DNA of 64,000 bases from Asterias rubens (GCF_902459465.1 NC_047062.1:21142001-21206000), one strand, 5' to 3'. Positions 20,743-57,357 are shown, counted from the stretch's first letter. The notes: generated from the letters alone by a model not told the origin. Translations and numbers: made by a program.

Positions 20743-22866
20743 ATGGGACTATGGTTCTCAAAGTTGACGAGTGCTTTCAGCGAGCTGGTTGGAGCTGGCG
20801 GACCTCCAAGCCGTATACTCATGCTGGGACTCGATGCTGCAGGTAAATAATGTAGTTACAATTTTCGGTCATTATTTATCAATATTTCAGAGCAACAGAT
20901 CGTTTTCAATAATGGGAATGACAATCATTTTGTTTTGCCCTGACGTCAGAAAAATGAAAGAGACACACCACATACTTCAACATTTTTTACAACAATCTTT
21001 GTAAACTTTACTGACTTTACAAACAGTGCTTATTGTAGTGTTTTTGTATCAACCCGTGGACCGTCTGACATCGCACAAGCTTAAATTCTTCACCATTTAG
21101 CAATTTTTATTCCCGATTCGGCAGGAGCACAGGAGTTGATCAGAAGTATAACAAGCGATTCTGTCCGATAGTTTAATTTGATGATTTTCTTCTTCTTTTG
21201 TTTCACCATCAGGAAAGACCACAATTTTGTACAAGCTGAAGCTGAATGAAGTTGTGAGTAGCATCCCTACGATAGGTTTCAACGTAGAGACGGTTTCCCC
21301 AATGCCTGGACTTACCTTCACAGTGTGGGATGTAGGCGGTCAGCAGAAACTACGACAGCTGTGGAGGCACTACTATCAAGGCACCCAGGGTAAGGTGTTC
21401 TCTTTACTTTATGAACTCATCAGAATCATCGACTTTCGTGACAAGTTTCTTGAATGTGATGATTTGGTAGTACTCTCGGTCAGCTGCCCAGATCGTTCTG
21501 ATATGATCCCTTTGTTTATAATTTGTCAAGATGGTCGGGGGTCGTCCATTCATGGATGTCAAGGTTATTCTGTTCTTTTTTGTAAATATAATTTATTTTT
21601 ATCTTCTCCATTTTCTGAGGTTTTGTTGAATTTGTTGTGTCCCCCCCCCCCGTAGCGAGCAGACACTTTATTGTTTCTTCATGCAGAAAAACAACATTTT
21701 TTTTAAAACAGACACGCGAATGTTGAATACTGTACTTCATTCTTTTTCGTCTTTTGACACGATGTTTTCAATCCTTTCGTTTTAAATATTGTTCAACGAG
21801 TAACTTTGTATGATTCACCCTTTCCTTACTCTCAGGTCTGATATATGTAGTTGACAGCAGTGATAAGGCACGTTTATACGAATCGAGAGACGAACTATTC
21901 GGTATTCTCAAGAACCCCGAGATTACCTCCACAGTACCCGTAGTCGTCCTCGCCAACAAGCAAGACTTACCCGGTAATTCCACTCACTTATATACAATTC
22001 CCTAAATATAAATTGCATTCCTGAATTAAAGATTCGTTTTTCCAAATTCCAAATTATGTAGATGTTACTTGAACATCTATACTTTTGTTACGCATCACTC
22101 TTAAGCTAGGGGCATCTTCAGACTGGTGACGATTCTGAATTCTGTAACTCGCGATTATCAACAATCCAGATGAACTTATTTGATTAGTTGCGTTCTTCCT
22201 CCTTGGTCCAACCAGATCAATAACACCCTCAACATCAGTTTTAAAGCATACAACAGACACTTATAAGTTTGACTTTTAAAACGGACAGTTTGTTACTTTT
22301 GAGTGAACGTTTGATAAAAAGGGATGAACACAATATTTTGGACAGACACGTTTGTTCAAAGAATAGATTTTATAGACATAAGAGTAACAAACACGAATTT
22401 GTTGTAGGTCTTTTCTCTCAAACATGAGCATTCATGACGCACAAAAGATCTTGCAACATGATAAAGGCCGAGTTATAGTCGGTCGCGCGATGGTCGGGCG
22501 TCGGAAACCTTGACGCGCGATCATAAAAAGACACGGTTTTTAGGCCTCAGTCTTAGGATTGCGCGCAAGATTTCCGTCGCGCGACCATCGCGCGACCGAC
22601 TATAAACCGGCATTTTGTAAACAGTTCAAAAATTACAACATTCTTCGTGCTGTCTTTACAATAAATGTATTTATTATGTTTTTTTTCACCACCAATCAGG
22701 TTCCCTTGGACCGTCTGACATTGCACAAGCTTTGAATCTTCATCATCTATCTGGACATCCCTGGCACATCCAAGGAACGTGTGCTCCAAACGGAGAAGGC
22801 ATCTACGAAGCAGTTAACGTCTTAGGGAAGATGGTTCGAGAGTACAAGAAGCTGGGGTCGCGGTGA
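20743..22866 (+). CDS. ARF-family small GTPase, ARL11/ARL14-like, copy 1 (193 aa)
   Basis: Exons 20743-20842, 21213-21389, 21836-21973 and 22700-22866; all introns phase 1 GT-AG; 582 nt. N-terminal MG, G1 [29 protein letters not shown]. One extra interswitch residue relative to ARF1, as in ARL11/ARL14. Confidence 0.95.
22466..22612. mobile_element. CpG-rich MITE of about 147 bp in intron 3 of ARF-like copy 1; absent from copy 2
   Basis: Imperfect TIRs of about 57 bp: GGCCGAGTTATAGTCGGTCGCGCGATGGTCG... / ...CGACCATCGCGCGACCGACTATAAACCGGCA. Confidence 0.8.
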
Positions 22867-24490
22867 GGATGGAACCACGAACAGTTGTGAGAAGTATGAA
22901 TTCATTATAATTGCGTTTATTAAAATGTTTGAACATCCAGAAACATGCAGGCCTAACAAAATGACAGACTCATGGTTTGAAGCATATTCCACAAAGATTT
23001 GTATGTATGCAAAGGAAATGTTGCCGGTCGATTTGTATACAAAGAGTGCCTTCATCATTTAAGAATCATTGGTGTAACGGACGGAGGGGGGGGGGTCTTG
23101 AAACCAATGGAGAATTTTGTATATATATACTTTGAAATGCACTTTGTGCAAATGTATGTTTGAAAACTTTCAAAATGTGTGACATAAAGTTAATTGTTGT
23201 AATGTACATGTATAATTGTGGGGCTAATTATCCCAAATCATTTTCAATTTACCCAGTAAGTTTTTCTTGTGGTTTAATATTTATTTTTGATGTATAAGTT
23301 GTGCCCGTTTGAAGGAATAATCTTGTGAATTTAAAAATTATTTATACTGTTGATTTGTGTACAGCGTATTGAGAAATTTATATTTTAATAATGTATACTG
23401 TTTGAAAACTATAAGAAAACATCTGTGGGCTCTGAACGCTTTTTATCCCTATCATTTTTAGAGAGACACATTATGAGTGTACATACACAGAAATAAAGGG
23501 ATGGTACAAACATTTGCCGTACAACAGACATTAAAAAGAGACTCACCTTTAAGATATTCCCCACGATTATATTAATATTAACGAAATAAAATAATGTACA
23601 TATTGTCTTACTTATAAATTGCATTGTGACTTTACAATACTTGATGGTCCCTAAATTTATACAAAATAATTTACTCCATCCTAACAAATTTATCGGAAAG
23701 GGGGGAAAAAGATTTTAGACTTTCCGAATAATAAAGCCTTGATGTCTTTCATAAAATTTAAGAAGTATTTTTAATTAGACCATTTTGTGTTGCAAGTGTT
23801 TGCACAAATTAGCTGAGTTGTGGTGAAATTAATAAATGTGTATATATTTTTAAAGAAGAAACATTCATTGTACCTCGGAAGTTATTTTGTTTTCCGTTCA
23901 TAGTTTTTATTCATTAGACATTAGAATTAAAATGTTCGGTAGTTACTCATAATTATGAACATGTGTCCCTTCGAAATGATATTAAATTGCATCGGTCGTA
24001 CAACAACAACTACAAAAGTTGATACAAAGATTTTTGGTAGCATAATTAACACTCTCTTAGAAAATGTAGAAAGAGATAACTGATTGACTGAATAATAAAA
24101 GGAAACAAAATAATACATTCTCTGAACACGCCTGGGTCAAAACTGACCAACGTTATGGGGCCCGTGGCATGACCTATTTCTTGGTCATGTTTTTTACGAT
24201 CGAAATTTGCTCAAGTTTGATCCATTTCTGAGTTATCGACACAGATTTCGGGTCATATTGATCCAGAAAGGGGACAGGCCCCCACGGGATCCAGAATCAG
24301 GGAAAATTCTGAAGAGGGACTTTTCATGGTGTAAAGACTTACTGCAATTTTGTTTTTGTTTTAAATAAAATTGATGAATAAATAAAAAATAAGTTATCAC
24401 TAATAAAAAATACTATAAAATTAACCATTTATATCTGAGAATTATTGTGCTACCCAAAACAAAAACTACCAAATCATAATCTTTGTTTAA

Positions 24491-56900: not shown

Positions 56901-57357
56901 ATTAAAGTGTTAGACATGAGTCACTCATAATTTCACATGTTGGCCTCTCTAGCTGTAACTCACTATCTCCCCAAAAGAATGAGAAAACTGATATGTGAAT
57001 AAATTTACTTCTTGGAGGTAGGACTGGTTGCCTGTAAATTGCCTCGTGTGACATGATCAATGTCAAATGAACATTCATTTACATCTTCAACTTTATACTC
57101 TCAATAAACCAAGCACACGTTTCTCTCTGTGTCAACCCCCAACAGGAGCATACAATGCAGCACGCATCTCAGAAGTGATGGACCTTCAGAGTCTCTCGGA
57201 CAATCATCCGTGGATGGTAATAGAAACCCAGGCCAGCACGGGAGAGGGTCTCCAAGAAGCCTTTAAAACCATGGCTAGAATGGTCAAACAATTCCATAAA
57301 GACTCCAGTAAAGCAGAGCTTGGAAACTCCAAATCGGGAGATGCAACAGAGGTCTAG
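35941..57357 (+). CDS. ARF-family GTPase copy 4 (218 aa) with very long introns 1 and 2
   Basis: Exons 35941-36070, 47548-47724, 56444-56581 and 57146-57357; the 177- and 138-nt internal exons and phase-1 introns match copies 1 and 3; 657 nt. [26 protein letters not shown]; G5 is TQAS. Joining the exons across 11.5-kb and 8.7-kb introns is inferred because no other matching exons were seen. Confidence 0.88.
38970..39341. mobile_element. TTAA MITE family 1, reverse orientation
   Basis: CTATTGGTAATTGTCAAAGACCAG ... CAATAGTGTCCACTGCCT, with the internal TTGATTTCGAGACCTC/GAGGTATCGAAATCAA hairpin. Confidence 0.8.
42372..43125. repeat. 4 diverged tandem copies of a unit of about 175-205 bp
   Basis: The GATT(C/T)..GCC.TGGTCGT anchor falls at 42372, 42547, 42735 and 42919. 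Shared CTTCTTGAAATTAAT, CTAAGTGTG and AAGTCCCCAACA motifs. Confidence 0.9.
44279..45478 (+). repeat. Two tandem copies (offset 865 bp) of a composite unit: head of about 240 bp with a tRNA-like SINE segment, followed by a 26-bp satellite
   Basis: 44279-44520 is near-identical to 45144-45385. A-box TGGCCGAGTGG 44379-44389; B-box-like GGTACAAGTCC 44438-44448. Arrays of 23 units and about 3.5 units follow the two heads. Confidence 0.9.
44521..45118. repeat. 26-bp palindromic minisatellite, 23 units
   Basis: GACCC anchor every 26 bp from 44547 to 45093. Unit is TGACCCGGA-A-TCCGGGTCA plus a 7-nt spacer, TTTCAAG or TTTGAAT. Confidence 0.98.
45826..46161. mobile_element. TTAA MITE family 1, reverse orientation, with a small subterminal deletion
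   Basis: TTAA at 45822-45825 and 46162-46165. Perfect internal 16-bp inverted repeat at 45979-45994 / 46008-46023. Confidence 0.85.
46300..47300 (-). mobile_element. Decayed non-LTR retrotransposon reverse transcriptase fragment
   Basis: Minus-strand frames contain PKVFEKV (like RT motif SKVFEKI, about 46730-46755) and [18 protein letters not shown] (like GVPQGSILGP, about 46452-46505) in the expected order, with many stops and frameshifts. Confidence 0.55.
48871..49229. mobile_element. TTAA MITE family 1, near full length (359 bp)
   Basis: TTAA|AGGCAATGGACACTATTGGT ... ACCAACAGTGTCCATTGTCT|TTAA. Confidence 0.9.
49768..50085. mobile_element. TTAA MITE family 2, 3-prime truncated
   Basis: TTAA|AGCCATTGGACCCTTTCGGT...; near-identical to the copy starting at 53562. 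Confidence 0.85.
50351..50675. mobile_element. Family-1-related TTAA MITE, diverged
   Basis: TTAA at 50347-50350 and 50676-50679; internal TTGGTAATTGTCAAAGACCAG and AGAGGGAGCCGTTTCTC motifs. Confidence 0.7.
51032..51061. repeat. (TGTAT)6 microsatellite
   Basis: Read directly from the sequence. Confidence 0.9.
52100..52395. repeat. Diverged local duplication of about 110 bp, two copies about 180 bp apart
   Basis: ACGATAGGAAG..AAGAATCACAA..GAAAGTTTGCGTAT..CAAAGGTCAACACT.CAAGTTT occurs at about 52105-52210 and 52288-52390. Confidence 0.75.
53562..53927. mobile_element. TTAA MITE family 2, full length (366 bp)
   Basis: Perfect 20-bp TIRs AGCCATTGGACCCTTTCGGT / ACCGAAAGGGTCCAATGGCT, with TTAA on both sides. 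Confidence 0.92.
54570..55250. repeat. Three diverged tandem copies of a unit of about 190-270 bp
   Basis: (G)TATCTGAAAGG..TAAGCCTGCAC.GAAACGT..AACCC recurs at about 54642, 54826 and 55096; GAAAGCTTT recurs at about 54580, 54778 and 55035. Confidence 0.7.

Follow-up and report, generated by a model that had tools for sequence, protein, structure and literature searches.

An Arl19 GTPase gene array in the starfish Asterias rubens: gene models, ages and constraint of its four copies

A 64,000-nucleotide stretch of the genome of the starfish Asterias rubens (GCF_902459465.1, NC_047062.1:21142001-21206000; the whole stretch is referred to as the window) harbours a tandem array of four ARF-family GTPase genes, designated c1 to c4. 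Judged by their sequences, they are members of the Arl19 group and not orthologs of ARL11/ARL14. Arl19 is a metazoan ARF-family GTPase that was lost by most vertebrates, and the four genes are an ordinary expansion of this family. With good confidence, the locus as a whole is read as a set of echinoderm-specific paralogs, three of which (c1, c3 and c4) are old and conserved, while the fourth (c2) is young and near-neutral. It provides a clean, dated case of small-GTPase growth, in which c4 split off long ago, diverged early and then changed little, c1 and c3 go back to another old split, and c2 is a young copy under relaxation. Additionally, a RefSeq model fusing three of the genes is corrected, and their exon plan is shown to be a trait of the family.

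Gene models and family assignment

Scanning for the P-loop, switch I and WDVGG motifs together with frame-by-frame reading detected exactly four ARF-family genes in the window, all of which are located on the plus strand. Each contains four exons separated by three phase 1 introns with GT-AG splice sites throughout, the first intron interrupting the Gly codon directly before the Lys of GLDAAGK. The Arl19 paralog c1 (20743..22866; exons 20743-20842, 21213-21389, 21836-21973 and 22700-22866) codes for 193 aa, its young duplicate c2 (26043..27945; exons 26043-26136, 26602-26781, 27138-27275 and 27746-27945) for 203 aa, the further Arl19 paralog c3 (30201..32478; exons 30201-30297, 30812-30988, 31579-31716 and 32306-32478) for 194 aa, and c4 (35941..57357; exons 35941-36070, 47548-47724, 56444-56581 and 57146-57357), the ortholog of sea-urchin Arl19d, for 218 aa. 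Two of the c4 introns are large (11.5 and 8.7 kb). The inner exons measure 177 and 138 nt in c1, c3 and c4, and exon 2 of c2 measures 180 nt. A preliminary description of the window had already proposed four same-strand genes with common phase 1 introns and 177/138-nt exons (180 nt in the second copy), all of which was borne out by the frame reading. Neither a fifth copy nor a relic, including one of Arl19e, was found by a tblastn scan of the whole window. At the protein level, c1 and c2 share 86 % identity, all remaining pairs 47-61 %. The c4 protein agrees residue for residue with XP_033647155.1, an identical sequence being on file for A. amurensis, and between c3 and A. amurensis XP_071791782.1 the identity reaches 99 %.

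The Pfam domain Arf (PF00025) was matched by every exon tested except exon 1 of c4, which gave no match. Single-exon scores ranged from 21 to 81 bits, with c4 exon 4 (21.0) slightly below the cutoff of 22.3, and the full-length proteins of c4 and c2 scored 195.9 and 180.3 bits, respectively. The complete set of ARF-family motifs (G1, the Thr of PTIGF, G3 WDxGGQ, G4 NKxD and G5 [TS][CS]A) is present in c1 and c3. In c1, which starts with MGLWFSK, these are GLDAAGKT, PTIGF, WDVGGQ, NKQD and TCAP, and the tail is basic, as is that of c3. The protein of c4 deviates at G5 (TQAS). In c2, G4 is impaired (NKQG, 27257-27268), FNREMV (26667-26684) is found where FNVETV is expected, one codon is added in switch II/alpha2 and the tail is non-basic. 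The P-loop, the Thr of PTIGF and DVGGQ are kept in c2; it is the PTIGF residue that binds Mg in switch I, the Thr of FNVETV being a different one. Among the last 16 residues, Lys or Arg occur five times each in c1 and c3 and twice each in c2 and c4. All four proteins start with Met-Gly. In c4, an MGAKSTK extension precedes MGHVMGK, and the N-terminal region contains a Cys. A Cys-containing N-terminus is common to the c4 orthologs, the residue being flagged C16 in a table of Vargová et al. (2021, PMC8358228), and MG[AG]KS[TS]K is added upstream in starfish and brittle star, whereas sea-urchin Arl19d starts at MGHVMGK. The C-terminal DATEV is present in every Arl19d ortholog from starfish, brittle star, sea urchin and sea cucumber (P0365, P0367, P0368, P0392, P0393 and P0402). 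Differences between the copies in G4 (NKQD vs NKQG), G5 (TCAP, TCAT and TQAS), N-termini and tails, as listed in the preliminary description, were all recovered. The AlphaFold model of c3 displays the ARF fold with a helix at residues 2-13 and the interswitch hairpin.

A maximum-likelihood tree of 65 rows was calculated under LG+C20 with five ARF1/3/6 sequences as outgroup. It separates an Arl19 clade of 60 rows from ARF1/ARF6 with supports of 99/98. This clade includes SkoArl19 (XP_002732532.1, P0168, from Saccoglossus) and SpuArl19d (XP_782942.1, P0402, in the c4 cluster) of Vargová et al. (2021). Since c1 to c4 cluster with these two, the label ARL11/ARL14-like, under which the genes had been described, names distant cousins and not the family. 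Vargová et al. (2021, Genome Biol Evol, PMC8358228) delineated the holozoan group Arl19, placed it close to Arf6 and Arl4, counted four members in S. purpuratus as opposed to single ones in Saccoglossus and amphioxus, and described ARL11/14 as vertebrate-only derivatives of Arl4, HsaArl11 and HsaArl14 being given as "1 exon only". The single-exon coding sequence of these vertebrate-specific genes contrasts with the three introns of c1 to c4 and their echinoderm host. In a structural search of Swiss-Prot with c3 (Foldseek, top 30), the best matches were ARF1/3/5/6 with 49-56 % identity, and none of the top 30 was ARL4, ARL11 or ARL14. Searches with full-length relatives retrieved a broad metazoan set of "ARF-like" proteins of 185-195 aa with 57-67 % identity. 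The first search, conducted with the 58-aa exon 2, had mainly returned fused or fragmentary ARF models, and a profile of a full-length c3 ortholog together with c4 exon pieces recovered the c4 orthologs.

Proteins from frogs, a salamander, a caecilian and a lungfish (P0207, P0234, P0239 and P0251) also fall within the Arl19 clade, where they form a clade of their own (100/99). The frog Engystomops pustulosus possesses three tandem, intronless Arl19-clade genes for proteins of 189 aa (L014 5078-17113).

Ages of the copies and selective constraint

All starfish, brittle-star, sea-urchin and sea-cucumber sequences, including c1 to c4, form one clade (95/97), outside of which crinoids, hemichordates and chordates are placed; the crinoid, hemichordate and amphioxus loci contain a single Arl19 gene each. 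The lineage-specific expansion that had been proposed is upheld by this eleutherozoan-echinoderm clade. In this clade, c4 and the Arl19d sequences from all four eleutherozoan classes are united (100/100) on a long stem (0.76) with very short tips, so that the c4 lineage is older than the split of these classes. Acanthaster possesses c1-like, c3-like and c4 genes and no c2. Since c3 pairs with the c3-like gene (100/100) and c1 with the c1-like gene (98/94), c1 and c3 predate the split of Asterias and Acanthaster. The two Asterias c2 genes pair with each other (100/99) and are nested beside c1 (100/95). Only c2 is thereby shown to be restricted to the Asterias lineage, c1 having been duplicated after the split from Acanthaster and before that of A. 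rubens and A. amurensis. The stepwise ages suggested for this tandem family are reflected by the tree, with c4 as the oldest copy, followed by c1/c3 and finally c2.

Identical intron positions, in contrast, did not hold up as a sign of recent duplication. Mapping annotated proteins exactly on their loci revealed four exons, three phase 1 introns and inner exons of 177 and 138 nt also in Ptychodera, Antedon, amphioxus, Holothuria and Diadema, and oyster Arl19 follows the same plan with inner exons of 177 and 135 nt. The plan differs in the jellyfish gene, and the frog gene is intronless. As the four-exon phase 1 plan is a trait of the bilaterian Arl19 family, shared by hemichordate, crinoid, oyster and amphioxus genes, it is uninformative on recent duplication.

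Selection was assessed by comparing A. rubens with A. amurensis, whose introns are 2-5.5 % diverged. In c1 and c3, two replacement and seven silent differences each were counted, corresponding to a pN/pS (dN/dS) of 0.09 (p=0.001 vs neutral). No amino acid is changed in c4, which is also 94 % identical to its counterparts in Patiria and Acanthaster, members of other starfish orders. The three genes c1, c3 and c4 are thus shown to be under strong purifying selection. In contrast, c2 displays 20 replacement and nine silent differences next to indels, yielding a pN/pS of 0.65 (p=0.27 vs neutral), and differs in this respect from c1 and c3 combined (Fisher p=0.003). The preliminary description of the family as fast-evolving therefore applies to c2 alone.

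Polarised by c1, the c2 lineage of A. rubens has exchanged V for R and T for M within FNVETV and turned NKQD into NKQG, next to three more changes. In the A. amurensis lineage, the A of the P-loop was replaced by D (GLDDAGK) and two residues were deleted, among other changes. Both species have in common that c2 carries one additional codon in WRDL[CS]YQG and that its original tail has given way to a non-basic one. Overall, c2 of A. rubens has lost the guanine-specifying Asp, the otherwise invariant Val of FNVETV and the basic tail, and is most likely heading for a pseudogene. A run of 146 bp is identical between c1 (22690..22835, plus strand) and c2 (27736..27881, plus strand) and extends from the final 10 nt of intron 3 into the first part of exon 4. 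Since non-coding identity around this run amounts to only 59-83 %, it likely represents a gene-conversion tract.

As shown by these data, one ancestral four-exon, phase 1 Arl19 gene, arranged head-to-head with RAB4, was duplicated after the split of the crinoids, one product founding the lineage of c1 and c3 and the other the divergent lineage of c4 (Arl19d). A second duplication, of c1 within the Asterias lineage, then gave rise to c2, followed by near-neutral change, and the 146-bp tract of c2 was probably overwritten with c1 sequence through gene conversion.

Copies with a crippled G3 motif were also observed in other arrays, namely LDVGGG in Acanthaster (L002 20090-21067), IDVGGG in Holothuria (L008 21700-23804) and WDIGFH in Diadema (L004, minus strand, 2661-5752). 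They resemble sea-urchin Arl19e (SpuArl19e), which carries MLDLGDW and an MGxC start.

Transcript evidence was drawn from Logan contigs. For c3, splicing is supported by a contig of run X2 (867 nt, depth 82), in which exon 2 is directly joined to exon 3 at the predicted junction, and a contig of run X3 contains exon 3 with exactly the predicted ends. Contigs matching c2 exons reach depths of only 1-4, and a run search with exons 1-3 of c2 and their introns did not list RNA runs X1-X3. A contig of run X1 begins exactly at the exon 4 acceptor, inside the tract common to c1 and c2. Expression of c2 is low at best. For c1 and c4, support comes from the NCBI models. Repeats of very high copy number at 27800-28400, 28800-29400 and 31000-31400 showed summed contig depths of 10^4-10^6 in all four runs and many internal joints. 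Related short ORFs (MSSIG...CEIIMKEK...HTKLCAF) are scattered over the window, e.g., near 39056, 45892 and 48896.

Alternative readings of the array

Several observations weigh against the reading of the locus as an Arl19 array with a decaying fourth copy. The tree itself contained no ARL4, ARL11 or ARL14, the exclusion from these groups resting on the published phylogeny and the Foldseek ranking. The interswitch encoded by c3 exon 2 is of the same length as that of human ARL14, and the gapless match between the two (~59 %, counted by eye on this one exon) argues for a real, distant kinship with ARL11/14. Branches relating c1 and c3 to sea-urchin Arl19a/b and sea-cucumber genes attain supports of only 88-90. 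Transcript evidence consists of Logan contigs from a stretch dominated by high-copy repeats and includes a single junction, that of c3. Furthermore, the open reading frame (ORF) of c2 is intact in both Asterias species, c2 is modelled by NCBI in A. amurensis, and low-depth contigs match its exon 2, itself 88 % like c1, at 95 % or more (>=95 %); taken together, c2 may therefore be expressed and functional.

The preliminary description had viewed the array as an ARL11/ARL14-like, fast-evolving and possibly immune trafficking module specific to the lineage. Such a view would agree with the expansion being echinoderm-specific and with the interswitch length shared with human ARL11/14; moreover, some amphioxus and frog relatives are auto-named "ARL14" in UniRef, and the clusters closest to c4 in a language-model search bear the automatic names ARL11 and ARL4D. 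However, the copies cluster with named Arl19 members, exon 2 of c3 matches ARF1 at ~74 % with one gap as compared to ~59 % for ARL14, and the top 30 Swiss-Prot matches are all ARFs. The presence of introns, unlike in ARL11/14, and the strong conservation of c1, c3 and c4 likewise disagree with it, rendering an ARL11/14-like module highly improbable. Hardly any better are the chances that c1, c2 and c3 constitute one gene for a triple-GTPase protein of 586 aa, as modelled in RefSeq (LOC117299631, XP_033639074.1, A. rubens). Residues 1-193 of this protein correspond to c1 at 100 %, c3 is likewise contained at 100 %, and c2 is covered to residue 192. The link from c1 to c2 is a canonical in-frame GT-AG pair, the donor of which (CG/GTGAGG, 22862-22870) is strong and overlaps the c1 stop codon, while the acceptor (in 26015-26045) precedes the c2 ATG by 23 nt; the Acanthaster annotation likewise fuses its c1-like and c3-like genes. 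Conversely, the link from c2 to c3 is not GT-AG, no read-through joints between c1, c2 and c3 are among the contig joints listed, and in A. amurensis the four genes (193, 222, 194 and 218 aa) are annotated individually. Fused two-domain ARF models are common prediction artefacts, which also head the representative search. As each unit retains its own stop and its own ATG-Gly start, the latter needed for N-myristoylation, the fusion is read as an annotation artefact, even though some read-through splicing of c1 into c2 is possible.

Concerning c2, it could have been retained as a neofunctionalised pseudo-GTPase, that is a nucleotide-free ARF or one of altered specificity, which sequesters the guanine nucleotide exchange factor or an effector of c1. 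Although neutral divergence amounts to 2-5 %, neither of the two species has lost the ORF or any splice site; the P-loop, DVGGQ and the Thr of PTIGF are still in place, and the gene-conversion tract holds exon 4 c1-like. Intact-looking copies with crippled G3 (SpuArl19e and those of Acanthaster, Holothuria and Diadema) exist elsewhere. Yet an ORF of ~600 nt can remain open by chance over such short divergence, and the pN/pS of c2 is indistinguishable from 1. The changes at core residues differ between the two species, which looks like drift and not like a common new function, A. rubens and A. amurensis differ in how the tail was frameshifted or replaced, and RNA support is weak. Retention of c2 as a pseudo-GTPase is accordingly rated as unlikely, although it is the strongest of the alternatives, and near-neutral decay of c2 next to three conserved Arl19 paralogs is preferred.

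Genomic neighbourhood, proposed function and known systems

Upstream of the array, a RAB4 gene is encoded on the minus strand (13549..19467) in six coding pieces ending with ...NRCGC. Its best matches among PDB structures are RAB4A and RAB4B, in agreement with the RAB4 neighbour reported in the preliminary description. Its first coding piece is located ~1.3 kb from the start codon of c1 in head-to-head orientation, an arrangement with the first Arl19 gene that was also found in A. amurensis, Acanthaster and the crinoid Antedon. A metazoan-wide RAB4-Arl19 pair was considered and rejected, as RAB4 was not found within 10 kb of Arl19 in Ptychodera, amphioxus, oyster, frog and jellyfish. At the Holothuria locus, the RAB4 peptides of the window gave no tblastn match, and the Ras-family neighbour there was not confirmed as RAB4. 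Further upstream in the window, an ORF at 3619-4095 (plus strand), continuing to ~5560, matches Pfam CCSAP (PF15748, E=3.5e-15), resulting in the gene order CCSAP, RAB4 and Arl19 array. Human CCSAP and RAB4A are presumably neighbours as well.

Independent tandem Arl19 arrays were detected in oyster (at least five genes), frog (three) and Diadema (at least five). Over 17 kb, Crassostrea virginica (L013 4567-21160) has no fewer than five genes of Arl19 type, distributed over both strands. In Diadema antillarum, the Arl19 region occurs twice on one contig (JBFRCO010000092.1; L003/L004 and L006/L007), ~1 Mb apart and with identical proteins, representing either a segmental duplication or an uncollapsed haplotype.

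With every nucleotide-binding motif and the Met-Gly helix kept, c1, c3 and c4 should act as myristoyl-switch GTPases. As in ordinary ARF-type switches, the GTP-bound proteins would attach to membranes by their released helix (MGxxxS/T), which is N-myristoylated and amphipathic, and recruit effectors through switch I/II. In c1 and c3, binding to anionic lipids of the plasma membrane or endosomes is probably strengthened by the basic C-terminal helix, by analogy to what has been proposed for Arl19 and Arl4. The conserved -ATEV of c4 is compatible with a class I PDZ ligand, and a PDZ scaffold is therefore the probable tether of this protein.

On a more speculative note, echinoderm Arl19 arrays may repeatedly spawn and keep crippled but open copies (c2, sea-urchin Arl19e-type, Acanthaster, Holothuria) as regulatory pseudo-GTPases acting on their canonical paralogs. 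In addition, the head-to-head RAB4-Arl19 arrangement, kept since the split of crinoids and eleutherozoans, may identify Arl19 as a partner that is co-regulated with RAB4 in endosomal recycling. This combined proposal is considered a long shot. Leads for research on Arl19 are the adjacency to RAB4 in echinoderms, the -ATEV tail of Arl19d and the Arl19-like genes of amphibians and lungfish.

With ARL11/ARL14, the array shares the interswitch length, the MG start and a distant kinship via Arl4/Arl19, whereas ARL11/ARL14 are vertebrate-only, have a single-exon coding sequence, match c3 exon 2 at the above ~59 % (ARL14, by eye) and are absent from the top 30. ARL4 (A/C/D) is akin in that the literature derives Arl4 from Arl19 (bioRxiv 10.1101/2025.10.27.684887, where basic C-termini are described for many Arl19 proteins) and in that both have basic C-termini tied to plasma-membrane targeting; it differs by its own longer interswitch insert and mostly intronless genes. 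ARF1/ARF6 provide the best matches among solved structures and in Swiss-Prot (49-56 %; ~74 % for exon 2) and have the same G motifs, N-terminal helix and predicted fold. In contrast to them, the c1-c4 family has one additional residue in the interswitch and a different C-terminal helix and tail (MVKxFxK), and the clade is a separate one (99/98). As to Arl19 itself, Vargová et al. (2021, PMC8358228) provide counts and trees and no genome arrangement, without mention of tandem order, RAB4 adjacency, the Asterias-only c2 or the Arl19e-type copy missing from the window; they state that vertebrates lack Arl19, whereas amphibian, caecilian and lungfish proteins are placed inside the Arl19 clade of the present tree. 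The genes c1 to c4 share a clade with SkoArl19 and SpuArl19d, their MG start and, for c1 and c3, the basic C-terminus would be consistent with Arl19, and the four sea-urchin copies reported there, as compared to the single ones of Saccoglossus and amphioxus, match an echinoderm expansion.

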